From Dimorphilus gyrociliatus (taxonomy: Eukaryota; Animalia; Annelida), in assembly GCA_904063045.1 (NCBI GenBank), contig CAJFCJ010000002.1, positions 682,001 to 746,000 of the forward strand: 64,000 nt of DNA, read 5' to 3'. Positions 3,401-63,139 of the stretch are shown here, piece by piece (the first letter of the stretch is position 1; each line of letters starts with the position of its first letter). Below the pieces are notes generated by a model. That model did no database searches and was not told the origin of the DNA. It was given only the letters and a program-made list of their open reading frames with translations. Made by a program: the position numbers and the translations under genes.

Positions 3401-4612
3401 AAAGATATATTTTCATTTTTTTCCGATAGGGACAAATTTCTTTTTTGGACATTTGGTAGGAAAACATTCACATTTACGATCAATAAGGTTTCCTTTGACG
3501 TCACTAGTTTTATAGACTCTAAATGAAACGTTGACTATATATATATATATATATATACAGTTCACTTATACAACAAACTATACAATTTTAAAATTACTGT
3601 TAAATTTTCATAAACGATTTTTGCTAATAAATAGAAACATTTAAAAATAAATACATATTCATTTACTCTATTTTTTAGTTACAGAAAGATAGATCAGTTC
3701 GACTGCGGGTAAATCCCGAACAGTCTAACGATTATAGAGTGGTTGTGTTTGGAGCGGGTGGTGTTGGTACGTACATCAAAATAAGAAATTAATGAGCAGA
3801 CACTCTGGCCTTAATCGAACAAAGCGTTTTAACAGATAATCAATAGTTCTTTTAATTTAACTTTATAGTAAAAAACATTGCTTTTTTTAAAAATCTTTTC
3901 AAATTTGAATACAAATCATTTTTATAGATCTGTTCCATAAATTCTGTCTTTCTTTAAGATAGATATTTTTGTCAAAAATATTACTATTTGAATAATGAGA
4001 GGTCCGGCTGTTCATTTTTTTTATACAAAAAAGATAATTATATCAAACTAATACATTACTATTTTAGGAAAGTCATCACTAGTTTTAAGATTTGTCAGAG
4101 GAACTTTCCAAGAGTCTTATGTTCCTACAATTGAAGATACATATAGACAAGTAATATCGTGCAATAAGCAAGTATGCACACTTCAAATAACAGACACGAC
4201 TGGTTCACATCAGTTTCCCGCAATGCAAAGATTAAGTATTTCGAAAGGACATGCTTTCATTTTGGTCTTCTCTGTTACCTCAAGACAATCCTTAGAAGAA
4301 TTAAAGCCAATTTATAATGAAATTAGGGGATTAAAAGAAGATGTAGAGTGTATTCCAATAATGTTAGTTGGTAATAAAATTGACGATACTGCCAGTAGAC
4401 AAGTTACAGAAAAAGTGGCATCTCAACTAGCTAAAAGTTGGACGTGCTCATACATTGAGACATCAGCAAAAATGAATACAAATGTAAAAGAGCTATTCCA
4501 GGAGCTACTTCAACAAGAAAAAAGACGAAACGTGAGTTTAAATGTGGATGGAAAAAAGTCAAGGGCTCGAAAATCAAGAGAAAAGCTTAAAGGAAAATGT
4601 GAAATCATGTGA
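468..4612 (+). CDS. DIRAS: Di-Ras small GTPase; exons 468-527 (candidate first coding exon), 3679-3766, 4068-4612
   Basis: The spliced translation reads ...[32 protein letters not shown]...[22 protein letters not shown]...KGKCEIM*, the Di-Ras signature with a CaaX end. The exon at 3679 has no ATG. A phase-0 ATG exon at 468-527 ([20 protein letters not shown]|gtagga) fits it but is less certain. Confidence 0.95.
3496..3503. promoter_or_regulatory. Perfect CRE palindrome in DIRAS intron 1 (others at 43247-43254 and 57503-57510)
   Basis: TGACGTCA seen directly. The 57503 copy lies 163 nt upstream of the Mab-21-like ATG. Function is not shown. Confidence 0.3.
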
Positions 4613-4788: not shown

Positions 4789-5491
4789 TTACATGTTCGG
4801 AGAAAAGCTTTTGTCTTGAAGAACACGTTCGATATCTTCTTCCATGGCCTGTAAAAAATATTTTATCATTCTAAAACATTTACTTGAACATATATATACC
4901 TTAACTGAAGAAACCATTTCACTGGTCTTGGCCACAGTAAAAAAAGCCTTGTTATAATCGGATAAAGAACTAATGTACCTTTCTACCTCCGAAAAAGAAA
5001 GCGTAATAATTCTTCCTTCAATTCGAACCTAACAGAGCACAGAACATATAGGAAGGAAAGATAACCCAGATACAAACTTGTCTTAAAAACTTTTTTGTAT
5101 ACCACTGAAAAAGTGCAGAAACATGTGGATTTTCAATCTAAAATAAATTCAAAAGCGACAGTTATAAAAAACACGTTGTTCAAATCACCCACAATATCCT
5201 TTGATTTTCTGCTCATTGAAGGTGAAATAAAATTGAAGCAGTTTTTTTCCGCATTATCGTCAATTAAAAATACTGCCCTTGATGATGGTTTTTTATCACT
5301 AGTAGGATACACATTAAAATAATAAAATGAAACGTTCAAAATTATAATACAAACTCGCCGCAGGTAGATAATGTGAAAACCTGACGATAATGAATATCAA
5401 TATCTTCATTTTTCCATTTTATATATAACTCAAAAGGATTTGAAGGAACAGTTTCCTTGTCAATGCGATAAACTTCGTGATATCTCGGCAT
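4789..5491 (-). CDS. Truncated pyridoxamine 5'-phosphate oxidase-like (FMN-binding split barrel) protein, ~163 aa, at least 5 exons
   Basis: Minus-strand splicing gives MPRYHE...SNPFELYIKW...FTLSTCGDDKKPSSRAVFL...SRKSKDIIENPHVSALFQW...RQVRIEGR...QDKSFSPNM*. This matches the PNPO motifs LAT..KPSAR, SRK and RQVR.EG. All introns are short GT-AG. Confidence 0.8.
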
Positions 5492-5838
5492 TCTAGATGA
5501 AAATATCAGAAAATATTAATTATTTTTATAGAATAACTTAATTTTATGTTTAAAAAAAGGGTTTTTAAAATTCATATTATTAAAATTATATTGACTAAAG
5601 CCTTTTTTTAGCACGCAATAACGGCTTTTTCTGTTTCGTAGCTCATCTTCTAAACAGTGCTGCTATCTGCTTTATTTCGCGGTGCTATTCATTAATAATG
5701 TAAAACAATACAGAATTTCATCAATCAATTGGAGATGCAGAAAGTTGATAGAGAAATAAATTTCTCTGAGGAATTGAGGATCTATATCGTTGAAATAGCA
5801 AGTTTTCAATGTTTGGAAAAAACAATCTGTAGAAAACA

Positions 5839-8800
5839 ATGAAAGGAATCACTAAATTTAAAGTAACTATAGAAATTTGTATCATAGAAATGATGTTGTT
5901 CGTTTCATGTAAAGAAATATTTTTGGATAAAACTGCAATATTTTTTACTTTTCCGATGAAAAGAAAAGTAACTGTAACAGATATAAAGACAGCAACACAG
6001 ACTAAAAAAGGGCATTTGGTATCTCAATGTTACTTTTTCTGTGTGTTTGATTCAAAATGTGTAGCTTTCTATTTTAATGACACATCAGTGGAATGCTTTT
6101 TATCAAATCTAAAGATAACCTCAAAATTCTATAAAAGAGACGAAATTTCAGAAAATGACAAAATAGAAAAAGTTAGGTCAATATATATATATGTAAGTCA
6201 GACTTTTTAAATAAAAAATTTTACAGGAGTTCAATGACTGCAACAAGCATAAGTGTCATGATTTCTGTGAATTCGAAAAATTGAAATTGAAAGATTATAG
6301 ATGTTGTCAATTAGATAGAAAACCCTGTTTTTCTAAATGGAATTCATGGACAGAATGGACGGAATGCGATGGATTGTGTGGACGAGGTATAAGAAAAAGG
6401 AAAAGATTTTGTAGAAAAGGAAATTGTTCAGGAAAAAAACTAGTTTATGAACAATGCTTAATAAAATGTTCAGGTTAGACTATTGTCGAATCCTCTTTTT
6501 AACTCATAAAATTTTTGTTTGTTAGAAGACAGTTGGGGTGTGTGGTCTATATGCTCTGAAACAACTTGCAGAAAAGATTATTCAATTAGAAAAAAGACTT
6601 TGACCAATGTTACAAATTTTCGTCAATGCCCAAAACTTTCTTGTAAACGTAAGTTAACATAATGTAAATAAATGCATTATATATATAAATAATAATATAA
6701 ATATCTTTGACTTACTAAAAAGCGCCATTACGTATACTTCAACCTTCGCACACTGACTATGGCATCCCACTATTCTATAATAATATTAAAAAAGTGTGGA
6801 ACATATTTTCTTCTGATAACACCATTATTTTGGACCTCTTATGTAAAAATCTTGGGTATTCTGGCATTTTTGATCACGGTACTTTTTTCTAGATAACAGT
6901 GCAAAAGACTATCGATATATTTTCAGAGTTACAAGAATCAAACAAATCAGTACAATCGATAAAATTAAATGAAGCTTGCTTTCAAAAAAAACAGAATTTG
7001 TTTTTTTGCATAGAAATGTCATATAATCTGGAAAAAAAATTTTCAAAAATACAATGCAAAGGTATTATTTTTTTAAGTCTAAGAGTTAAAGTGCACAATT
7101 CACAAAACATGTAGGAGCAGCAATTTAATTAAGTTTTTTGATTAAATTAGAATATTTATGAATCAGTTGTGAATTGTAGTCAAGGCAATATTTAATTATG
7201 TCTGATTGAAAAAACTAACAAAATATTCAACAATCTACACGTGTGTAGATAGCTTCAACAGTAATTGCTGAAAATTTGTTTTTAAAAACGAAGAATATTC
7301 TTTAACTTAAAAGTCGTTACATTTTTGTTAAAGGGCTCATTTTTTTAAAAAATAATCACTTTTTGTTAGATCTTAGATAACAATATATTTGTAATGCTTT
7401 AAATATAGTTGACGGATTTTACAAAATGTGGACGGACTGGACCATCTGTAATGTCACTTGTGGAGTAGGAATAAAAATAAGAAGTCGAGAATGCAGTTTA
7501 CCTAAATATGGTGGAAAAAATTGTAAAGGACCTGGAATAGATCAAAAAATTTGCAATAACTTTTCTTGCCCAGGTAATTTTCTTTTCTCAATGATTTACT
7601 CAACAAATTCTTTAAAGTTGATGGAAGGTTCAAGGAGTGGTCAAATTGGACTTCATGTTCGGTATCTTGCAATGGTGGCATAAGTAACAGGTATAGAACA
7701 TGCGACGGTCCTTTTTTTGGTGGAAAAAATTGTTCTGCTGATTACAATGAAAAAAGAACTTGTAACATTCAGAGTTGTCCTGGTAAAATTTTTTTGGAAA
7801 TTCCAGTTATCTGTAACTTTAAAACGTTACAGATTGTTTAACCAAAAACAAATTTTCAGTCTTTTATTTACTTTAATTCACTCCAACACCTGTCCTTCCT
7901 AGTAGTTAATTTAGCAGCATGAAAAAACCTATCCGTGAAATTGGTTTTATTCCGATTAATTTTTTTGTTTTCAGTCGATGGACAATGGACAATATGGTCT
8001 AAATGGGGAAGCTGTAACACAACATGCGGAAATGGTTTACAACAACGCTTTCGAAATTGCAGTACACCGAAATTTGGAGGTAGGCCTTGTAATGGATCAG
8101 GCATTGAAGCCAAAGATTGCTTTTTAGGACCTTGTATTGGTAAGAAAAAGATATGTTGACTCCATTTTCTACAAAGTATTTATTCAGTTGAAGGAAAATG
8201 GGGGGATTGGTCAGGTTGGTCACTTTGTTCGGTGACATGTGGTGGTGGAGTAAGAAGTAGAAGCCGTAAATGTGTTGGTGAAAAAGCTGCATTGCCTGTT
8301 GTTTGTGATGGTAAAGACAGAATTACGAAGATTTGTCATGATAGAATTTCTTGTGATGAGCGTTAGCTTTTTCGTTTTTTCAAGAATATTCAATGAATAT
8401 TTATATATTTCAGTTCAACCAACGTGTACGGAATACAAAGATTTGGGCTTAGAAGATTCAGTTGCAGTTCAAATAAGACCTTTAATATCTCCCTATACAG
8501 AATTTTGGGTGAAATGCAATCTAGAAGACATGAATGGGATCGGAATTACTGAAATACGTAATTTACTATAGACACTAACTATTCTCTCTATAAGATAAAA
8601 TTTTAGCTCACAACCAAATGAACGAAACAATTGTACAAGGACAAGAAAACCCTGGACAATATGTTGCCGTACTAAAATATAACACTTCAAGCGTAGACTA
8701 CACAAGGTTAATCAAAGCCAGTAAAAAGTGTAGACAATATTTGCAATGGAAATGTAAATCTGCTTCCATAGTGAATCCACAAAACGAGAATGACTTTATG

Positions 8801-9452
8801 ACGTTTTGGATGAATAGGTCGGTTAGTTTTTTTAAAAATTGAAAAACAAATAAAAACTATTTTATAGGAATAATGACCATAAATTTTATTGGTTTGGAGA
8901 CGGTAGTAAAGAAGTTGGATGCAAATGTATGGAAAACAAGTCATGTGGTGATAAAACTAATCCTGAACATCTACAATTAAAGTTACTAATTTCTTAACTG
9001 TTCCTTCTTTTAACTCAATAAAACATTTTTGTAGATGTAACTGTGATGCAAATGATGTAGTTTATAGGGAAGACAGTGGATTTATCGAACAGAAAGATGA
9101 TTTGCCAATTACACGTTTCAGAGCAGGAGATACAGGTATTCAGAAAGCTGATGTTTCAAATGTATTTTTTTCTGGAATTTTTTATATATTTTGAAAAACT
9201 AGGTGGGACAAACGAAGAAGCCAAACATAAAATTGGGCCTTTAGAATGTTGGGGAACTTTGAACCTTTTTAACTAGACAGTAATTTTCTTTTGCATTAAA
9301 AAAAAATTTTTTTTTTCAAAAGAGCCTTAAAAAAAATTTAAAAAAAAAATGAATATATATCTTAATAAGTTCAAATTTCAGGTGGAAAAAGCGAGGAAGG
9401 ATACCACATCATAGGACCACTTCAATGTTGGGGAATTATCTTTCAATCTTAG
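5839..9452 (+). CDS. Secreted multidomain protein A: signal, PAN/apple, degenerate EGF, 2 TSP1, degenerate SRCR, 4 TSP1, CASPR-type fibrinogen-like domain; two alternative last exons (9203-9276, 9382-9452)
   Basis: WxxW..C..TCG.G...R.R.C repeats lie in phase 1-1 exons. The SRCR remnant LLCKNLGY is at 6722-7061. The C-terminus QYLQWKC...YWFG...CNCDAND...DSGFI..KDDLPI...GDT...IGPL.CWG matches the contactin-associated-protein fibrinogen-like domain. Confidence 0.88.
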
Positions 9453-9709: not shown

Positions 9710-15400
<5,691 letters not shown>

Positions 15401-42393: not shown

Positions 42394-44462
42394 GTCAACT
42401 TTCATTAGAAATCTGTGGAAATCCTACTAACTCAAAAGGCTTTAGGATGTAATCTTCAGACCGGTAAACCGTTTCCGCCTGCTCCACCATTAACTAAGAT
42501 GGGACATCACCATCATCATTACAACATAAATAAGAGATCAAGTCAGATTAGTAATTGTGGAGAGCGACATTGCCTTGGCTTAAGTTTGAAACGACGTTGC
42601 AAGTTGAAATGCTGTGGCCTATACTGCTGTTTGACAGTAAGATTAATTTATTTTATACTCGATAGAGGGAGCTCGTATATATGTATTCATTTCATAACTG
42701 GTCCTTTTAGTTCGTTTTAGTAGTCCATGGTCTAAATGAAATAAGTTTTAGTTTGATATGTGAGATTAAAACTATAAGAAGTAGAGGAAAATTCTAAAGA
42801 ATTTTTTCCTGGCTAAGGTCATAGGAGGTTAATTATGTTTCAAAGTCTCATCGTTTGTTGATACTATATCAGTTTAAATCAAATAAAAAAATTCCCCATA
42901 ATCAAATTCCATAGCTATGGCTTAACTTATTTTAATATTCTAATGTGTAAGGAAATTTCAGACCTAATCATCATTTTTTATTATGGAAAACATTGAATTC
43001 TCACACATTTTTTGTTAGGCGTATTTTTTGTCAATACCTACTTTTTTTATAGGCTAGTTGTCCAACAGTAAAATTTCAAGCATGTTATAGTGCTCAGTGA
43101 TATTTAGCCATCTTTTCCTAGGTAAGATAAAATCTTAAGATATGATTCTTTGGCAGAAAATTTTTTCTGTTCCATTTTATTTAAAAGTTTAGTATGAAAT
43201 TCGGTTTAGGAATTGCAGGGAGTTTCTTGAGAACACGTAACCATACTGACGTCAGAGCTTTTTGTTTCCAAACGATGTTTTTAGAGGTTGCGCTTCGTAT
43301 TTCATAGCAAGGTTACGAATTTTGCTCTAATGAAATGGATTTATCTCGACACATGTCAATGTCGGTAGGTATTGTTGGGTACTCTAAATATCAAATCTGC
43401 TTTTTGACAATGTATTTAAATTATGCTAACTTCTAAAATTCCAATATTTCTTGTCAAGAAACGAAAAGAAATTTAATTATAGTTACTGAGTTGTTTTATA
43501 TAATAACTGGATTTGAAGGAGCAAATTCCTGACATTGATTATCTTTATTCGAAACAAAAATTCGTGAATATACCGTAGCTTTCCAAAAAGAAGCATATAA
43601 TTTTTTTTATCCACATCAAGAAAACTTTGCTGTTTTGAGCTACTGAATATATTTTAAACGGTATAAAATTTAATTTTATCCTATACGCTGCTTAATGAGT
43701 AATATTGTATGTTCTTCAAAAGCAATAGTAATTACTATGTGAAAATTTATTTTTATTTATGTTTTTAAGAGAATTATTTCCTTATAGAATAAAATATCAC
43801 CAAGAGAAGAGAAGCATAATCGATTCTGGGGATTGTCATCAGTTCAGGTATTCAATCATGAATTTTATAGTATCAACTTTTGGACCATATCTTAGAAAAA
43901 AACAATATTATAAACTGAGCAGTTAATGTATGGCCAACTTTCTCTCCTAAGAAATGGAGAAGGACATTGGTGTAGTATTGAGAGATTTCCTAACTTCAAG
44001 AAATATTACATTTTAATTATGAAAAAGGGATGACTTAAGGAAATTTCTTATATAAAGTATACTACATTGTTTAAAGTTATTAGAAGGATATGATTCACGA
44101 GTCATATGGTGTCTCATGTTATTCGAATTTAAGACACCTCTCATTGGGACTTAAGACGAATGCATTGAAATGTATAATTGATGCGAACTGTAGGGTATTA
44201 TGCTTATGATGTTTTACAATATTTATCCCCAATATTTGTTCTAATATTTACCACATAATAATTCATTAAATAACCACAGGTAGTCGCCGTTACGATTGGA
44301 GCTGTAGCATTTTTCGTTGCTATAGTTGGACTTACTCTTTTAATAATGAAGAGATGCTCACCTGGCTGTCGGTATCTTAAAACTAACAACAGAAATGACA
44401 CTCAGATTTTAGTTATTGAAGGACCGGATGGTTCTGATGACAGTGATTTTGACAGTCCTTAA
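41194..44462 (+). CDS. Orphan cysteine-rich type I membrane protein, ~295 aa; exons 41194-41407, 42056-42258, 42409-42636, 43788-43847, 44280-44462
   Basis: All five exons join in frame via GT-AG introns. The product has a signal-like N-terminus, a Cys-rich domain, His5, an NKR dibasic site, a CC..CC module, a TM helix VVAVTIGAVAFFVAIVGLTLLIM and an acidic tail. Confidence 0.75.
42311..42387. repeat. (TA)n microsatellite in an intron
   Basis: Near-perfect TA dinucleotide run of about 75 nt. Shorter TA runs occur near 3155, 3537 and 12488. Confidence 0.95.
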
Positions 44463-50690: not shown

Positions 50691-50838
50691 GTCTTGTTCT
50701 TACTTCTTTGCTTTATTCATAAGTGCGGATACGAATTGTCTTATGTGAATTCGATTTCATATACATCTTTTTCTAATATTCACTTAAAATTATGTCATCA
50801 TTTCTAGAGTGAGATCACCTTATGAAGATTATACCAAT

Positions 50839-52167
50839 ATGGAAACATCAGTTAATCGCGCCATCAAAAAAGGATTGTTCAAGCAAGTGCGATATCTTAT
50901 TGAATTTGGTGTGAACGTTAACGAAAGGGATGAAAGCGGACGAACTCCTCTCATAAATCTAGCATTTGTGGCAGATAACTCTTGGGCAGTTGGATTAGCT
51001 CGTAATTTACTAGAAAAAAATGCTTCAATTAGAATGGCTGACGTTCGTGGAATGAACGCTTTTCATTACGCTTGCTTATTTAAAAAATTATGTCTTATTG
51101 AGATTTATTTAAAAGCTCAAGACTTTGATGTTAATCAGGCTGATAAGCAAGGAAATACAGCCTTACACTATGCTGCTTGTATTGGTGACAGGTCCTTGTT
51201 AATGATTCTTGTCAATAACATGAACAAATACAGCTTAAACATGAACAGACCAAACTTAGAGGGCTGTACCCCCGTTAGCCAAGCATTAAAGTATGAAAAT
51301 TTTGAGAGCGCAAATTTTCTGCTAGAGAGAGGTGCCAGTGAATCAGTCATTGAAAGCAAAGACAAATCAGTGCCAGAATGGAAGAAAGTCTATGTAGATT
51401 CAAGGTCAGTTGATAGGTCTTCAGTCGTAAAAGAAAATTATAAAAAAAGGGAGATGGAGAACGTCCATAAGAATAACATTAAATCTGCACGACAAGATCA
51501 TTATTCTTCAAGGCGAATTAAATCAGCACCTGGTACAAGAAGAAATGATACTGTTGAACAGGAAGCTATAAGTGCATTAGAATATTTGAAAGACAAGCGG
51601 ATAGAAAATGCCGGTTCTTCTGCTCTAAGAAATAACCCCTACAAAGTGTTCGAATTGACAGGCATTAAGGGCGACCAAGATCTACCGTTCAAACTTCAAC
51701 CTCATCGAATTCAATCGGCTAGAACTTCAATATCAAGTTCTTGGCGCTCAAATTATAGAAAATTATTGACTGGTTTCGATTATCAATTTAGTAGGTCTTA
51801 TGTAGCTTTTGTGAAATATCCCGAAGAAGATTGGAATTTGGATGAAGAAGGTATTAGAAATTTTGCCTCACGCAGACCATCCGCTACACCAAACCAGATT
51901 TTGGCGGAACCTGTAATACGCAAAAAAGGCAAAGACTTAAGAAGAAAAAGTGTAGTTTTAAAAGTAGAAGCAATTACTTCCTTCCAAGAAAAGATTGATC
52001 GAAACAACGAAAAAAGAAAAAGTATAAAAAATTCTAAGGAAGACTCTTCTGAAACAAGTTCCGATAAAAGAAATTCCGCTGGAAAAAGTAAAAATGTTGA
52101 AGCAAGCCCTAGAGCGAGAAAAGTTTCCATGGAATCTAATGAAAAACTAAACCCAATAGCGGAATGA
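50839..52167 (+). CDS. Ankyrin-repeat protein (ANKRD63/ANKRD34-like) with a basic, disordered C-terminus
   Basis: Ankyrin consensus repeats VNERDESGRTPL, GMNAFHYAC, DKQGNTALHYAA and NLEGCTPVSQA. First ATG is at 50839; an upstream exon is possible. Confidence 0.9.
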   Translation: METSVNRAIKKGLFKQVRYLIEFGVNVNERDESGRTPLINLAFVADNSWAVGLARNLLEKNASIRMADVRGMNAFHYACLFKKLCLIEIYLKAQDFDVNQADKQGNTALHYAACIGDRSLLMILVNNMNKYSLNMNRPNLEGCTPVSQALKYENFESANFLLERGASESVIESKDKSVPEWKKVYVDSRSVDRSSVVKENYKKREMENVHKNNIKSARQDHYSSRRIKSAPGTRRNDTVEQEAISALEYLKDKRIENAGSSALRNNPYKVFELTGIKGDQDLPFKLQPHRIQSARTSISSSWRSNYRKLLTGFDYQFSRSYVAFVKYPEEDWNLDEEGIRNFASRRPSATPNQILAEPVIRKKGKDLRRKSVVLKVEAITSFQEKIDRNNEKRKSIKNSKEDSSETSSDKRNSAGKSKNVEASPRARKVSMESNEKLNPIAE

Positions 52168-53534: not shown

Positions 53535-54542
53535 CTAAAAACCTCCCTTAATTGGATTGCCTTTACACAGAATGCCTGGATCCATACTCGATGTCGGATC
53601 CTGAGTGACTTTTGAGGAAAAAGGCACTCCTTCAGTTTTCTGTTGCGGACATAGCAATTTTCTCAAAGACTTTTTTATCGCATTTGAATAGAAAGTAAAT
53701 ATGAAGACGTTAACTCCAAAAGACAAGTGCGAAACAGCTACTGTATACTTTATACTATTTTTGTCATTAATTGCGTGAGAGACAAAAATTAATGAGACTG
53801 TGTAGGGTACAGTGAACAAAAAATGTAGGAATAGAGTCAATATAACAGTAATAAATAAATTTCTTTCTTTCTGTAATCTTGGGAGCTCAAAAGTATTGCC
53901 AACATCAACTAGAATTTTTTCCTGTCGCTTAGCCATACGATTAGTAAAGAAGATAATATAAGCATTGACTAATATCCAAACAAGATAAATATAACACAAA
54001 ACTTGAAGAAATATATTGTTAGGGTCATCAATTTTGTTACAAATATTTGATATTGGTGTCATAAGAAATGTGAAGTATATTGAGGTTGGGATAAGCCATG
54101 TCGAAGGCATAATTATGTATTTCCACCTTTGAATACTGCACCATTTTTCGTGTTGTAGACTATATGCAAAAATGATAAGTCGATCAGAAGCCAAGGCTGT
54201 CAGGTGAGACAAACTCAACATATTAGTATAAAACATGCTTGTCATATTAATTGTGCAAAATTTTTCGTTATTTTCTAGTATTTCAAATGCATAAGGGGTT
54301 CTTAAGCAAGGTATTGTAATAGAAGCTAGAATATGTAAAACTGATAAGCTGATGATGCAACAGTATGTTCCATATTTAGTCTTTCCCGCCTTAATCACAG
54401 ACGTAATCATTAGAATATTAGCCACAATCATCCATATTGAACAGGCAAACATAAAGACAGTCGAAGCTTGTGAAAAGTGTTTGGTAATATCCTCCATTAA
54501 ATTCTTCTCTCTCAGGGTATTTGAGCAGTTGCAGGATTTCAT
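53535..54542 (-). CDS. Intronless divergent class A GPCR (orphan)
   Basis: Seven hydrophobic segments; TM1 AN; TM3 Cys (KFC) and ALASDRL (DRY variant); TM4 TWLIP; TM6 FTVPY. Confidence 0.85.
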   Translation of the reverse strand: MKSCNCSNTLREKNLMEDITKHFSQASTVFMFACSIWMIVANILMITSVIKAGKTKYGTYCCIISLSVLHILASITIPCLRTPYAFEILENNEKFCTINMTSMFYTNMLSLSHLTALASDRLIIFAYSLQHEKWCSIQRWKYIIMPSTWLIPTSIYFTFLMTPISNICNKIDDPNNIFLQVLCYIYLVWILVNAYIIFFTNRMAKRQEKILVDVGNTFELPRLQKERNLFITVILTLFLHFLFTVPYTVSLIFVSHAINDKNSIKYTVAVSHLSFGVNVFIFTFYSNAIKKSLRKLLCPQQKTEGVPFSSKVTQDPTSSMDPGILCKGNPIKGGF

Positions 54543-55221: not shown

Positions 55222-57340
55222 TTACTGGTTATTTAAATTTTTTGGAGTATGTTCTAATCTACTCATGTCACTCAAAGGCTCTTTTTCATCACTCTCTTCT
55301 TGCACTGTTGTGAGATTTCTATCTCCATCTCTCGATCCTAACTCAGTACTCATGGAGCTACTACTACTCGCTGAAGGGTGGTCTTCCGGATGATAAGGCA
55401 ACATGCGATTTTCAAATGGATCTTGAAATTTTCTCTCTTGTAAAGGAGAAATGATTCCGCATGATTCAGCATAACTAGATGAAGACGAATATGCTCTATA
55501 TTCCTTTTTAGCCCATATACCTTCGCAGAGCTCTTCCGAAATTTTCCCATTTTTGTTTTCACTAAGAAGTAATTCCTTATCCTTTATATGAATTAACTCT
55601 TCTCCTTCGGGGGGTACATTACAATCCTTATTATTTTCGTTATTGGGATATTTCGTAAGAAGATTTTCTAGCTCTAAGCAATTTGTCTCTATAAAATTCT
55701 TTGTAATCTCTTCACTGACTGAAATTTTGTCATCAATGTTTTCTAATTGTTCTTTTGTTGCCCTTTTACTGGATATCATTGACATTGTGTCTTCACTCTT
55801 GTTATCTTTGAAAGAAGTACACCATAAACTAGAACCCTCAGGTGTCAAGTGTCCTGGAGAATAAGTATGGTCATCTCCTTCCAGTTCTTCATCCTGTACT
55901 TTTTCGATAGCAATCGGACATTTTTGTAAAAACATCTGTTCTACTTTTTTAGGATTTTCACAAATGGTCATTTTCAAATTAAGAAGCTCTACTCTTAAAG
56001 TGGAGAGTTTATCTTCCTCGACATGGGCTAGCATATTTATTCTTTTGTCCAGAAAGAGAGGTAAATTTCCGGAAGCGACAAAAAAGATCATGTAGTCTAA
56101 AAATAACATGAACCAAACAGCTAATGAGAAATTAGCATTTGCATGTTGTCGGCAAATTTTTAAGGTGATGTTACAAATGATATCTTGTTGTAGAATCTTT
56201 AAAGTATTTTTGGTAAGACTTAAATTTTCAAACAGTTTTATTGCCTTTTGTAGTTGAGTTAAATGAGGTATACGAAATATCTCATGAACATACAACTTCA
56301 AAACAGGTAAAAAATTTATGGACCAATAGCCAGGAAACGTTTTTTCCAATAAAAGTTTTTTATACTGCTTCAATGAAGCGCTTGGGAAAACTTGTAAAAT
56401 CTCGTCAGTTACTTGACCTTCTAAACTCCACAAAATATTTCCGAAATCAATTTGATTTTTTATTTTATGCAAAATCCTGGTACCTTCGAAACACATAGGT
56501 GGTTTTTTGGGCATTGGATTATTGACGCTTGCCCCTGCTGGCCATCCTTTACCTCTAATAACCGGAATTATATTTACTGTAACGTAATTGCTTTTTGCAT
56601 CTAGATTTTTATCATCATTACCAACACTCTTATTTTGGGAACAAGCCAAAGAAACTTGCAAGATTGGAACTTTCGAAATTATTTCAATTTTGAACGTGGC
56701 CCGTTTAATAACTTCCTGTACTCCTGAAAAGTAATACATTTATTGTAAAAATGGGTATATGAGGTTTTTAGATCAATTCAATACCTTTAATTAAGTAAAA
56801 GTACACATAAGCTGAACTTATTTGTTTAGTATCTTCATTCAACAGATGGCCCCACTTTCTTAGCTCTGCTCTACTTTCTTCAGCTGTCAATTTATCAGAA
56901 AATCGGTAAACGGCTCTTCCTGAAGATATTCCTTTATGGATTCCAGACAAAATCTAATAAAGAATAGTAAAAGCAAATTTAGGTAATTACTGTGCTCACA
57001 ATATGAGTAAAATTACCTGAAAAGCATCTTGATGAATTGATCTACTCATTGGAATTCTCAGATTAAATTCATAAAAATTTAATTGTTGAACTATGCCGCC
57101 TAGTTCAAATTCTTCATCGATACATTTCGAAAAGTGAATGCTCAGCTTCTGAAATGATTTGTATAAAGATGAAGTGAAGCATTTTACTCTATTCCAATTT
57201 TTTGTGAGTAATTCTCTACTGCCTTTAGTTTCGCCATACTTTTTGACCTTTATCTTCCGGAAAGCAAACTCTAAAGACGCCTCTAACTGTTTTTCAAAGC
57301 ATTCCTCCTTAGACATTCCCGCCTGAAATTTACCTGCCAT
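55222..57340 (-). CDS. Mab-21/cGAS-like (cGLR-fold) protein, 664 aa, catalytic residues degenerate, acidic disordered tail; exons 57340-57017, 56953-56785, 56723-55222
   Basis: YEFNLRIPM, GRAVYRFSD...KWGHLLNEDTKQISSA, TVNIIPVIRGKGWP and FVASGNLPLFLDKRINML occur in the same order as the Mab-21 motifs EFE/D, GCAVLKLSD..W...YLSA, V(D/Q)I.PA...WP and CL....PHYF.P..NL. Confidence 0.75.
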
Positions 57341-57727
57341 TCGATGTTCTTTGCTTTACAGCAGGCAATCAAATAGAAATACAACAAAGATTTATACAAA
57401 AGCTCTCTTATGATTAGACTTTAATAAATGACGGGGATTAGTGGATAATATAGGAACTAACTAAATATTAAATATTCTATTCAAAAAACTTATTTATATG
57501 CCTGACGTCATGAGAGTTTTCCTATTCATATCGATTTCATCAGTATTCTTGACATATTCATGCAATGTGAACAGGAATGCTCTTTCATTTAGTTTTTTAA
57601 CAACACACTGAAAACATTTTCTCGAAAATATTCATTATAACTGCATTGCTAAATACAATGAAATTAAATTCTACATTCAAGAAAACTTAAACGTCTACTA
57701 ACATTGAAATGAATTTTAGAGGAGTTA

Positions 57728-59700
57728 TTATATTTGTGATAGGTCAGCAGCTGATTGAGATGCACTCTGTACGGTTCTTTGTTGATTGTCATCTGTTGAC
57801 AATCGAAAACAACTACAGGAAAGTACTTGGTAGGTGAGAACGAAAACCGACGAATTTATGTAGCACAGTATATTTGCTGTGAGAATAGCAGCGAGTGAAG
57901 TTTGAACTTCGTATCTTGTTAAAAATCCAATGAAATATCTTGGTGAGACACAAATAAAGGTAAACGCAGCGCAAATTTTCAGTTTGTTATGCAAGTCAGT
58001 GATTGCCTGATTTTGTATATTGACCATCTTTATCGCATTATACATTAAAAAACAGAGAGGAGCTAAAATTCCAGTGCAGAGAACAACAAACACGAAAGAC
58101 CGAGAATTTCTATTAACTGTTGTATAATCGAGATTGCAGATGTTTCCATCTAATGGGATTAGATAATTGGGGGAAATAACATTAAATTGAATGTTAATTG
58201 AGCTGTTACCTTGAAATGGCAAATAAACATTTTGGTAAATTTTAGTATTTAACAGAAGGGCATCGACAGAAACTGATTCATTAGGAAATATGGAATCAGA
58301 TAAAGCTTTGTTTAATTCTCCAGTTATCCAAGAAGTTAACAAGCACTTCCAAGACGAAGACTCGCTAACCCGTCCAACCAGCTGAATTAAAGGAAAAGCA
58401 TCTATATTGTCGACAGCAAAAGAATAGGGTATAATTCCAGCGGATTTTAAGCCATAGTCAATTTTATGCGAAAGAGAACTGTTGGACATCTTTTGATTCA
58501 TATAAACTGAGGTAGAATTTCGAATTGTAAGAGTAAGAGGAAAATGACCTTTAAGGAAATTTATTTCACCCCATCCATAAATTGGAGCAACGGAAACTAA
58601 CAATAACATCAATTCTATACCCCAAAATATTATTTTTATGTTTAAATTTGAAAATATTCCCACATGTTCTTGTTTATTAGTTGTAAACATTTTTCTGCAA
58701 GTAAAAGATGATTAATATTAGATCATAACTACAAGATATATGTACCGTTCCATAAAAATGATAGCAATCAACCAAGTTGTTGTAGATGAGAGCAACATAT
58801 CAAGAACACCAACCACTTGACATAATATATTACCTGCTTTATAATTTTCTAAAAGCGAAAAAAGTATAAAACTAGATGATAATTAAAGGTATATAATATT
58901 AACAGGGTTTTCTGAGCAATTGTTTATCACGTTTTGAAAATAATAGTAAATACGTCCAAATTTAATCTGATGAATTGAGTTTCTTAAATTGATAAACTAT
59001 TGAAAATTAAGCAGTCTCGCTCAGCTGTGTTTCTACTAATATACTTGTATAAAAATCTTTTTAGAAAATATTTTTCTTTTAATACAGTTTCTAGTTCTAT
59101 TTGAGAGCAAATAATTAGGTATCGGGTTTTTTTCGCATGACTGCTATAGTCTATTGAAAATTTTTTCGTGTAATGAATTTCGTTAACAATTTCTTATTAC
59201 GACAAAATGATGACAGAAAACGTGAACTTGTTACAATATTAATTAACTCTATAAGAAAGATAAAATTAGTTTAAAAATATTTCTATTTTTCTACCGACTA
59301 TCTATTTAAATGATAACTATCTCTTTTATTCTATTACAAGAAAATTGACTTACGAAATGTTAGATATGAGATGTGAATTAGCAGTAAACTTATCGTATTA
59401 AACAAGCAGGCTTTTGATAAACTTCTCATTAAGCAGATCAATGACTTTGATAAAACTAAAGAATTTTGAGTCTGAAATCTGAAAAGATGTTTTTAAATTT
59501 CCTCTTAATATTGTATCATAATAGTACCTCTTTAAAAAAAGAGCATGGCTCATGATAACACTGAGTAGGCATGTCACAACAGTTGCGTTTTTTATCCTTT
59601 CGAAAGGATTTTCTTCTTTTTTTGCTCGACAAATTTCCATTTCTTGATCAAACCCTGTCTCAGTTAGTAAGAGATTTTCTCTCATTTGATCTAGCGCCAT
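57728..59700 (-). CDS. Divergent class A GPCR, 455 aa, with a very large ECL2; exons 59700-59528, 59478-59354, 58848-58746, 58694-57728
   Basis: The four exons join in frame. TM3 GNILCQVVG...TWLIAIIFMER; TM4 ...APIYGWG; ECL2 end CNLDY; TM5 LAPLCFLMY; TM6 FICVSP; TM7 LCYINSSV. Confidence 0.8.
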
Positions 59701-60240: not shown

Positions 60241-63139
60241 ATGGCTCACATGCAAGAGAGACTATTGCAGCTAATTTCTAAAGATTTTACCAAGAGAAAT
60301 CATCAAGAAATCCTAGGTTTACTGCCCTGGCTACGAAAAAGAAGTCCATTATTCTTGAATTTACATACAGGTTTTTTTAGAATTATTTGACTATCTCTTA
60401 CAATTCTTAATTTTGTTCAGATTTAATTGTTGACATTATCAAAGAGTGTGAATATGAAAGAATTGAGCGTGATGAAGTCGTTATAAAACAGGGTGAAATA
60501 GGAGATTGGTAAGTGCTCACTTTCGTGGAAAAAGAAGCTTTTCTTAAATCAGTACACAAATTTTAGCTTTTTTATTATCCTTACTGGAACTGTCAGTATC
60601 TATATTGACACTGCCAAAAGTGAAGAAGATAGTAATTTTTCTCCAACTAGGAGAACAAATGTTGTGAAAAGAAGATCAGCGAGAGCAGATACAGGTCATA
60701 GTGAGGTTTTTGACGATGAAAAGGAAGACGATTGGGATAATTCAATAACAGAATCAAGGAGTTCGCCTGTTTCACCAGATAAACAGAAATCACCAACGAG
60801 AAGAAGAGCAACTAAACAGCAACTTAGGCAGCGAAAATATTCTCTTGACAGATCTAAATATGGAAATTTCATTTTACAATTAGGTAAGTGAAAATATTCA
60901 ATTTTAGAGAAATATAATAGTTTCGTGCGACAAAAAAAGATGCAGGAAAGAGCTTTGGTGAACTAGCTCTAATTAACGAAGATTCATCAAGAAATGCCAC
61001 AGTTATTACGGATGAAACCTGTGACTTTTTGGTAGTGGATAGAAGTCTTTACGAAAGAACTTTAAAAGTAAATATTAATCATATCTTATACTGAATATAC
61101 ATAACTTACTATTACTATATCGTATGCTGTAGTATTTTTACAAAAACACCGTATTCAATGTTGAAATGTAACTTTCACTAGAATCATCAAGAGGCTGAAC
61201 TAAATGATCGCAAAAATTTTGTGAATCACCACATTCTCTTTAAAAAATGGCCTCCTAGACTGAAAAATCTCCTAATTATGTCCTTAATAAAGGAAATGTA
61301 TCAATTTGATTCCCTCTTGGTTCAACAAGGACAAAAAATAAATGGGTTGATATTCTTAAGGAGGTAGATATATTATATTAAGAGTTATACAATCATTTAA
61401 CTAATTAATTTTTATACTATAGAGGAAAAGCATTAATAGAATGCGAGCCTTTAAAGCACGAGATTCAATATCCGAATCAAATTCCTTTTATAACTACTGA
61501 AAAAGAAGCTATATTACAGCTAGACATGAGGAGAAAAGTTAAAAATAATTGTAGCAAGTCTATTAGGAACAAAAGAGTAGAAACTCGCAGGTTTGGAGGA
61601 TATGCATCAGCTGAACAACAAGAGCGAGAAAAAAATGTCTGCCTATGCCACGTAGGGGAAGGGGAGATAATTGGAGATTTGGAAATGGCATGCGATTTGT
61701 CAACTTATGCTGTAACTGTGAAGAGCAATGCCGCGACTGATGCATATATCCTAACAAAAAATAATGTTGAGAGGCTGTTTAACCGTAAAGCAGCATCCGA
61801 TACTTTAAAAATATTAAGAGAACTTTTTTTTAAAAAACTAACTTCCCGATTAAAAGGACCTAAAGCTGGAGATATTCCACTTTTGTCTCATTTGTACTTT
61901 GTTCTCCAAACTCCTCCACCAAAGAGCCATTCTCTTCCTGAGTTTGCATTAGGCCAAAAGGCAAAAGCTAAATTACCAGACGACGAAATGCTTTTTTCTC
62001 ATCAGCTGCAACAATACAGCAAAGGTCGAGCGGAATTGTGCTTACCTATTCTACACGAGTCGTATTACTTAAAACATTCTATGCAAGAGCGAGCAAGAAT
62101 ACGTAAGAGTGTACAAAAACATAACTCGCAAGAAATAAGAGCTAAAAGGCATCGGAGAACTATGCAGCCTCCCAAAGCTAGAAGTTTAAAAGCATTAAGA
62201 ATGGCTTTAAATGAGCATGAAGAAAAGGCAATTAAAAAACAGAGAGAAGAAATAGTTGCTGAAATTAAGCGTCAACGAGATGAGGAATTGAAATACTTGT
62301 TCGAAAACGCAATAAAGCAGAAAGAAAATTTACCAAAATTGCCAAAATTTTATAGACGACTTGAAGAGAATATAGACAACTTGATAAAGAAAGAACCATT
62401 ACCCAGTATACCAATAGAGCCTAAAATTGATCAAGATTTATCAGCATGTATTGAAAATTCAGATACAAGCTTTCAGAGTGAATCTATGATATCGAAATCA
62501 GAGATAAGTGAGTTAAAGACTGGTGATACACAAATTATTATGAGAAAAGGTCCTCCTTACCTTATGCCTATTAAAGAAAAAACTGTAATTTCGGAGTTTA
62601 AAGAGAATGATGAGATAAAAAGCGAAGAAGAATCTGAAAAAGACATAGAGATTCAAGAGCAACAAGAATATCAGAAATTGAACAATGACAAGCAAAATAT
62701 TGAAAGACCTCTGTCCAATGTTTTCCTTTGGAAGAAGTATCGTAGTGTAGCCTCTCGACACCCTTCTTACAGAGACTGGGAAACAAGTGACAAAACATTA
62801 TCATTCTTGGAAGATCGACTTCGGCAATTTAGGACCCCAAAACAGAAAGTAACTTTCCTCCCAAAACTTAAAAGATTCGAAACTAATGACCACTTAACTG
62901 AAGATCAGCCCAAACCTGGTGGAAGAGTACTTGTCAAGTCAACCAGATGCCCAGAAGGAAAGTCTGAGCGAACTTTTGCTAATCATGAGCATGTACGATA
63001 CAGCCTTGTTGAAACTCTTCCTAATTATCAAAATTTGCATAAAAACAAACTTTTACAACACATGTTCATGGATAAAGCTATAGAATCGTACAAAAAAACT
63101 ACTACGGGTGAAACTTCTAACCAAGTAGTGCTTCCTTAA
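60241..63139 (+). CDS. Cyclic-nucleotide-binding domain protein (CNBD2-like) with two cNMP domains, 6 exons
   Basis: VIKQGEIGDCFFIILTGTVSIY, phosphate-binding cassette SFGELALINEDSSRNATV, and a second domain with LVQQGQKINGLIFL...GEIIGDLEM. Exons join in frame. Confidence 0.9.

Follow-up and report, generated by a model that had tools for sequence, protein, structure and literature searches.

The Mab-21 fold is shared by enzymes and by proteins that act without catalysis. In human cGAS the catalytic triad is formed by E225, D227 and D319, to which E73, E75 and Q169 of MAB21L1 correspond, and replacement of the triad by Ala, or the double change E200Q/D202N, inactivates porcine cGAS (PMC4897736). 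The cGAS-like receptors (cGLRs) of animals are recognised by the active-site motif h[QT]GS-x8-20-[DE]h[DE]h-x50-90-h[DE]h, which is criterion 1 of their published definition (PMC9980059). Because surveys of cGLRs retained a protein only if its active site was complete (PMC9980059), Mab-21 proteins that have lost the site have gone largely uncatalogued. Action without catalysis has been described for the shrimp proteins LvMab21-1/2/3, which are reported neither to bind nucleic acid nor to make cGAMP, and to act through protein contact with IKK-epsilon (PMC12928593). Here we describe a Mab-21 protein from the annelid Dimorphilus gyrociliatus, DgyrCDS1078, whose gene lies on the minus strand of a 64,000-nucleotide stretch of contig CAJFCJ010000002.1 (hereafter the window). 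Our analysis indicates that DgyrCDS1078 is probably a cytosolic protein of the Mab-21 fold (cGAS/MAB21L1-like) whose nucleotidyltransferase (NTase) active site has been lost and which acts without catalysis.

A far-diverged member of the Mab-21 superfamily

DgyrCDS1078 belongs to the Mab-21 superfamily, in which it stands far diverged. An AlphaFold2 (AF2) model of residues 1-445, built from a 32-row alignment, reached a predicted local distance difference test score (pLDDT) of 85 and a predicted template-modelling score of 0.84; a single-sequence model of the same residues (pLDDT 33) was discarded, and the alignment-based model alone was used. It contains the bilobal fold by which the superfamily is recognised, with an NTase-core N-lobe, a helical C-lobe and a long spine helix. 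Foldseek placed human MAB21L1 at the top (E 7e-12, template-modelling score by target 0.74), followed by cGAS, MiD51, MB21D2 and cGLRs. VIA-align superposed model residues 9-428 on MAB21L1 (Z 27.6, 337 residues, root-mean-square deviation 3.4) and gave Z scores of 26.1 to MiD51 and 25.7 to cGAS, with residues 9-432 covered overall. In a search of the ESM Atlas, the atlas's independent model of the protein and our own AF2 model both fell on Mab-21 clusters. These matches bear out the Mab-21 fold that an earlier note, made from the letters of the window, had proposed for this gene.

The sequence alone is far less telling. A phmmer search of PDB sequences with the core returned no match, and exon 3 alone reached just E ~2 to 7lt2, which made profiles necessary. 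Homologue searches by words yielded no more than DgyrCDS1078 itself and one orthologue, and a family-alignment run added one fragment. When DgyrCDS1078 and the exon pieces of the orthologue (alignment A1) served as the query of an exhaustive profile search against 1.8 billion representatives, 28 proteins were found at E<=1e-3. These include uncharacterised proteins of the annelids Owenia fusiformis (CAH1786134, E 1e-26) and Capitella teleta (CAPTEDRAFT_199633, E 3e-16) and of the brachiopod Lingula anatina (LOC106155915, E 4.5e-13), with a fly cGLR as a farther match (E 4e-7); the others are mostly fragments from unannotated assemblies. The best 51 PDB matches of a family profile built without cGLRs are all Mab-21-fold chains, among them cGLR1 8gjy (E 1e-14), Tribolium cGLR (3e-12), MiD51 (1.5e-10), MB21D2 (1.7e-10), MAB21L1 (1e-9) and cGAS (2e-5). 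Relatives also reach the curated Pfam models: the Owenia protein clears the cut-offs of both Mab-21 and Mab-21_C, the orthologue scores 25.5 bits for Mab-21_C (cut-off 24.1), and the Mab-21 NTase cut-off of 24.1 is exceeded by the relatives P0004, with 27.5 bits, and P0007, with 25.1 bits. Among 26 aligned family sequences, 20 match Mab-21_C and five the Mab-21 NTase domain.

The gene itself is read from three minus-strand open reading frame (ORF) pieces in 55222-57340, which join through two GT..AG introns into three exons (Table 1). A script found the translation of the joined coding sequence to match a public protein exactly, namely P0001, which is DgyrCDS1078 of D. gyrociliatus (664 aa). 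The exons had been searched separately, exon 3 returned P0001, and whole-protein searches then used P0001. This protein had neither a name nor a Pfam domain and is now annotated as a Mab-21-fold protein. Both introns fit the median intron length of D. gyrociliatus, which is 66 bp (PMC7854359). The sole public run that holds this stretch, X1, contributes a 10.4-kb RNA-derived contig in which both introns are removed at the exact modelled borders, and the gene is therefore transcribed and spliced. The same contig (10,429 nt) continues unbroken through intergenic DNA on either side into the neighbouring genes, which could reflect overlapping untranslated regions, read-through (the genome being compact), or RNA that was merged with DNA traces at assembly; it is therefore uninformative on transcript ends.

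The orthologue is known from a 55%-identical protein fragment (P0002) in Logan assemblies of three runs and from a locus (L001), the source of both being presumably another dinophilid. L001 has the same three-exon structure (5332-5658, 5711-5879 and 5927-7356), in which exon 2 is also 169 nt long. Its exons were joined in local scripts, in which we aligned the two genes pairwise and counted substitutions. Since synonymous sites are saturated, with a proportion of synonymous differences (pS) of ~0.7, dN/dS is not computable, and we give pS and the proportion of nonsynonymous differences (pN) instead. Over the core pN is 0.30 at this saturated pS, and thus selection has kept the frame intact while the two species diverged for a long time. 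Retention of the gene in a 74-Mb genome that shed many genes likewise suggests a real function. It is barely credible that DgyrCDS1078 is a decaying gene or an annotation artefact without function, as its scores below the Pfam cut-offs and its few relatives (the 28 proteins above) might be taken to mean. The 664-codon frame is intact over three exons and precisely spliced in RNA, the orthologue shows the same exon structure and synteny although synonymous sites are saturated, pN lies far under pS, and the fold is predicted with confidence, all of which contradicts a pseudogene.

The active-site positions in DgyrCDS1078 and its family

The earlier note had read GG, E-F-N and V-N-I-I-P at the places of the cGAS active-site motifs, and these are present exactly so, as G81-G82, E91-F92-N93 and, in exon 3, V214-N215-I216-I217-P218. 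In the AF2 model, E91-N93 start strand 91-98 and N215 lies within strand 212-221, and the loop 73-81, which is of low confidence, ends at G81-G82 just before strand 91-98. As modelled, this placement of the glycines and of both strands is the topology expected of an NTase core. A profile built from full-length family members aligned end to end with human MAB21L1 (profile 16-408 to chain 8-360, E 8.7e-10) and paired E91 with E73, N93 with E75 and N215 with Q169. Through the homology given by this profile alignment, E91, N93 and N215 are therefore the true triad positions, and two of these three, N93 and N215, are non-acidic. In addition, G81-G82 occupy the place of the GS motif, with Gly-Gly instead of Gly-Ser. 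With the full-length profile, the E-F-x strand of the family also falls on strands of two cGLR structures that read D/E-E-F-D, and with the cGLR-free profile the Asn column coincides with the Asp in the strand of the Tribolium cGLR.

The contacts to the donor nucleoside triphosphate (NTP) have fared no better. Those common to MAB21L1 and cGAS are E238, K255, Y272 and K275 of MAB21L1, which are E383, K414, Y436 and K439 of cGAS (PMC4897736). By profile alignment, the MAB21L1 residues map to L306, E330, D345 and C348 of DgyrCDS1078. At the cGLR motif, DgyrCDS1078 reads L-G-G, eight residues, E-F-N-L, 121 residues and V-N-I, which departs from criterion 1; criteria 2 and 3, homology over both the NTase core and the bundle of helices at the C-terminus and predicted structural homology to cGLRs, both find their counterpart here. 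Judged by its sequence, DgyrCDS1078 is not a cGLR by the published definition. Because the cGLR active-site motif is broken and E200Q/D202N kills porcine cGAS, we read DgyrCDS1078 as a pseudo-enzyme. With the fold kept, two of three triad residues non-acidic and GG in place of GS, the call of a pseudo-nucleotidyltransferase in the earlier note is supported as probable, and residual or non-canonical nucleotide handling is its main rival.

That note had further described the triad as carrying conservative Asp-to-Asn changes, of which one half stands. Asn does occupy two positions that are Asp in cGAS, but the direction of change does not follow from the family. The N215 column is Asn in 12 of 27 sequences, Asp in one, and otherwise T, R, H, Q, A, Y, S, K, V, W or L, while the orthologue, which retains L-G-G and E-F-N, reads I-Q-L with Gln at the third triad position. 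The N93 column holds D, N, Q, T or L, and no carboxylate is conserved at either position. With triad columns this variable across the family, the loss is therefore old and family-wide, and Asp-to-Asn describes a contrast with cGAS, not a recent substitution. The Glu at position 306 is fairly conserved (17/29) and is Leu in both dinophilid proteins.

What emerges is an unnamed annelid-brachiopod family that has lost the metal triad and most contacts to the donor nucleotide and retains the cage fold under selection. The Owenia, Capitella and Lingula relatives share with DgyrCDS1078 the core length, the family motifs and the missing acidic triad, but they are only 17-23% identical to it, measure 470-519 aa, end shortly past the core and have no acidic tail. 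One family motif, G-x-x-x-x-[IV]-P/S-x-G ... T-x-E-E ... W, lies in exon 2. The strongest signature, G-x-G-W-P-x-G ... P-L-P-K-x-x-P-Y ... D-G-Q-S-L-W-x-L-E, spans residues 222-300, past the third-triad strand and ahead of the C-lobe. It exceeds in length the corresponding MAB21L1 segment W-P-L-P-H-I-P-W-P-G... and may form a family-specific surface.

Could the protein still handle nucleotides, either as a weak or unusual NTase that binds metal through Asn and Glu, or as a nucleotide-binding sensor without catalysis? Several points weigh against loss of the active site and in part favour this alternative. E91 is retained, Asn and Gln are able to coordinate Mg2+, the core is strongly basic (net charge +20) and the whole bilobal cage is preserved; the related adaptor MiD51 binds ADP/GDP. 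The authors of the MAB21L1 structure left open whether that protein, with Q169 at the third position, has residual activity, and it binds CTP/ATP with sub-micromolar affinity in a basic pocket that is separate from the active site (PMC4897736). DgyrCDS1078 lies under the Pfam cut-offs for both Mab-21 domains and has no match at all to the Mab-21 NTase domain (PF03281), the donor-NTP mapping rests on a profile alignment at ~13% identity that may be off by one or two residues, and in the N-lobe MAFFT misplaced the true fly cGLR by one to two columns. For this last reason the triad equivalence was taken from HMMER profile alignments. On the other side, replacement extends to two of the three residues of the triad, to the Ser in the GS loop and to each of the four named donor-NTP contacts, the family conserves none of these except Glu306, which both dinophilid proteins have lost, and a double E-to-Q/D-to-N change is enough to inactivate cGAS (PMC4897736). 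We therefore regard continued nucleotide handling as unlikely, albeit the most serious rival, and favour non-catalytic action. The protein would then serve as a binding or scaffold module, for which MiD49/51 and, as reported, shrimp Mab21 are precedents, and its basic core may be the surface for a ligand or partner.

The acidic tail, the upstream region and the neighbouring genes

Beyond the core, DgyrCDS1078 carries a tail with 21% Asp plus Glu, 13% Ser and a net charge of -23. The earlier note had given it as a ~250-aa acidic Ser-rich tail; the composition holds, the length is 224 aa, and the tail is not mere filler, as it contains two conserved islands. Island 1 is 83% identical to the orthologue over residues 451-480 (pN 0.11) and island 2 is 73-83% identical (pN 0.09), with a pN of 0.45 in the linker between them. 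No other window of the protein is as well conserved between the two species as these islands. A homologue search found no tail relatives beyond the orthologue, and an ESM Atlas feature and structure search with the tail gave no usable match.

For non-catalytic action, the dinophilid-specific tail would provide docking or regulatory sites in the form of these two Ser-rich linear motifs, which would probably be controlled by phosphorylation or would fold back onto the basic core. Two further points tell against this part of the proposal. A regular-expression scan for pLxIS, beta-TrCP, TRAF, LC3-interacting region, nuclear localization, nuclear export, FFAT and TBK1-type motifs revealed nothing convincing that is conserved in both species, giving just a loose E-S-C-G-I-I-S and generic CK2-type sites, so we name no specific tail motif; and the role of the tail, be it phospho-regulated docking or masking of the basic core, is one that we purely infer. 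It is interesting to speculate whether the spiralian family is a single-chain sensor-adaptor, in which the dead Mab-21 cage still recognises nucleic acid or nucleotide and the dinophilid islands signal directly. If so, the phosphorylatable islands would recruit a kinase or transcription factor in the manner of STING or MAVS tails and bypass the cyclic-dinucleotide messenger, but we hold this to be highly improbable. The tail islands, being more conserved than the fold, offer a handle for finding partners.

Table 1. Features of the DgyrCDS1078 gene and its surroundings, with positions in the window and, where available, in the orthologous locus L001
Feature	Window	Strand	L001	Content and basis
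Exon 1	57017-57340	-	5332-5658	Codons 1-108, phase 0; N-terminal spine helices, GG loop, strand E91-F92-N93; ORF and splice donor read, RNA contig
G81-G82	57095-57100	-		Place of GS motif
E91-F92-N93	57062-57070	-		First two triad positions
Intron 1	56954-57016	-		63 nt, GT..AG; joint 56953->57017 in run X1
Exon 2	56785-56953	-	5711-5879	169 nt, ends phase 1; N-lobe segment; sequence, family alignment
Intron 2	56724-56784	-		61 nt, GT..AG; joint in run X1 given as 56722->56784, "cut +1"
Exon 3	55222-56723	-	5927-7356	Remainder of N-lobe including N215, C-lobe helical bundle, tail, stop 55222-55224; ORF read
N215 codon	56572-56574	-		Third triad position
Family signature, residues 222-300	~56317-56553	-		
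Mab-21/cGAS-fold core, residues 9-432	55921-57316	-		Including both introns; AF2 model, Foldseek, VIA
Mab-21_C (PF20266) match, residues 323-409	55990-56250	-		E 0.04, 14.4 bits, below cut-off 24.1
Acidic tail, residues 441-664	55225-55896	-		Composition
Tail island 1, residues 451-485	55762-55866	-		Core motif G-S-S-L-W-C-T-S-F-K-D-N-K-S-E-D-T
Tail island 2, residues 575-645	55282-55494	-		Ser run, ...D-P-F-E-N-R-M-L-P-Y-H-P-E-D-H-P-S..., ...N-L-T-T-V-Q-E-E-S-D-E-K
Palindromic CRE consensus	57503-57510	.		TGACGTCA; 163 nt upstream of ATG
TATA-like sequence	57491-57498			TATAAATA; directly after CRE
TAATCC-containing element	57434-57442	-	~5236-5244	ACTAATCCC; ~95-100 nt upstream of ATG; upstream alignment
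Intronless ORF	57728-58690	-		320 aa; adjoins Mab-21 gene upstream
ORF without Pfam match	61526-63139	+	788-2404	~537 aa; upstream of Mab-21 gene
Rhodopsin-type receptor (7tm_1)	53535-54542	-	8001-9059	Intronless; downstream of Mab-21 gene
Ankyrin-repeat gene	50809-52167	+	10250-11542	Past receptor, downstream

Upstream of the gene, the perfect cAMP response element (CRE) that the earlier note had reported is present at the distance it gave. The octamer TGACGTCA occurs three times in the window (also at 3496-3503 and 43247-43254) against 0.5 expected from shuffles, and three of 100 shuffles reach three. In the upstream alignment, the corresponding site of the orthologue reads CGACGTTA, and thus the perfect palindrome is not conserved; ATAAATA is retained. 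A second element, ACTAATCCC, is identical in both promoters amid otherwise loosely conserved AT-rich sequence. It contains TAATCC, the core to which homeodomain proteins of the K50 paired type, Otx and Pitx among them, bind.

Gene order is common to both species and runs from the ~537-aa ORF through the Mab-21 gene and the intronless receptor gene to the ankyrin-repeat gene. The 320-aa ORF that adjoins the Mab-21 gene matches no Pfam family at E<=0.01; its product contains hydrophobic stretches and several N-x-S/T sites, and it may encode a diverged receptor-like membrane protein. The neighbourhood bears on whether DgyrCDS1078 is a decoy or regulator in a cGLR-STING pathway, for example by soaking up nucleic-acid ligand or by pairing with an active cGLR, a role to which the earlier note had pointed. 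The fold is shared with cGLRs, the C-lobe is closest in sequence to the cGLR1 structure 8gjy, the core is basic, and the few expanded gene families of D. gyrociliatus are mostly immune-related (PMC7854359). However, no STING, active cGLR or immune gene is adjacent, the neighbours being the receptor and the ankyrin protein, and over the whole structure the best match is MAB21L1, a developmental protein, and not cGAS. We found no link to cGLR-STING signalling and consider such a role improbable.

Comparison with known systems

With cGAS and the animal cGLRs (PDB 8GJY, 7LT2 and human cGAS), DgyrCDS1078 shares the bilobal cage fold (Z ~25 to cGAS) and a basic core, and its C-lobe similarity to cGLR1 8gjy is the strongest of the PDB matches (2e-15, full-length-member profile). 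Unlike these enzymes, it lacks the complete active-site motif, and no zinc-thumb motif was seen.

Human MAB21L1/MAB21L2 (PDB 5EOG/5EOM) provide the best structural match, with 337 of 349 residues aligned, and MAB21L1 is the sole solved protein that the family profile aligns over its full length. MAB21L1 is not known to have enzymatic activity. Its third triad residue, Gln169, is a non-acidic amide, as are Asn215 of DgyrCDS1078 and the Gln of the orthologue, and the region past the third-triad strand is similar (G-x-W-P ... P-L-P). MAB21L1 differs in having both E73 and E75 together with all four donor-NTP residues, where DgyrCDS1078 retains the first Glu only (E91), and in being 359 aa long and tail-less. 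An orthologue of MAB21L1 is ruled out by the identity of 12-14% and by the match at E73 alone, the remaining positions being N93, N215, L306, E330, D345 and C348.

MiD49/MiD51 (MIEF2/MIEF1) likewise use the Mab-21 fold as a non-catalytic adaptor, and MiD51 is close to DgyrCDS1078 in structure (Z 26.1) and by profile (E 1.5e-10). The MiD proteins have an N-terminal helix that holds them in the mitochondrial outer membrane, and they carry the Pfam domain MID51-like_C, whereas DgyrCDS1078 has a hydrophilic N-terminus and a C-terminal acidic tail. A MiD-like membrane adaptor was rejected: there is no PF21297 match, and the first 70 residues are charged helices, although a formal transmembrane predictor was not part of the analysis. 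Residues 364-384, a hydrophobic stretch, form a buried helix of the C-lobe in the AF2 model (pLDDT ~97), not an anchor.

The shrimp proteins LvMab21-1/2/3, which we compared by description only, are an invertebrate Mab21 precedent for non-enzymatic action. Their domains are reported to be well conserved and to model well on MAB21L1, whereas DgyrCDS1078 is far diverged. In its probable mode of action, DgyrCDS1078 stands nearest to these shrimp proteins, to MiD49/51 and to MAB21L1/2, which use the fold non-catalytically. Non-enzymatic Mab-21 relatives are thus already a known kind, and the gain from DgyrCDS1078 is incremental, not conceptual; the spiralian family, which is unnamed, and the dinophilid tail with its conserved islands are the parts worth pursuing. 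Alongside MiD49/51 and the shrimp Mab21s, DgyrCDS1078 adds to the evidence that the Mab-21 fold has repeatedly been reused for non-enzymatic ends.

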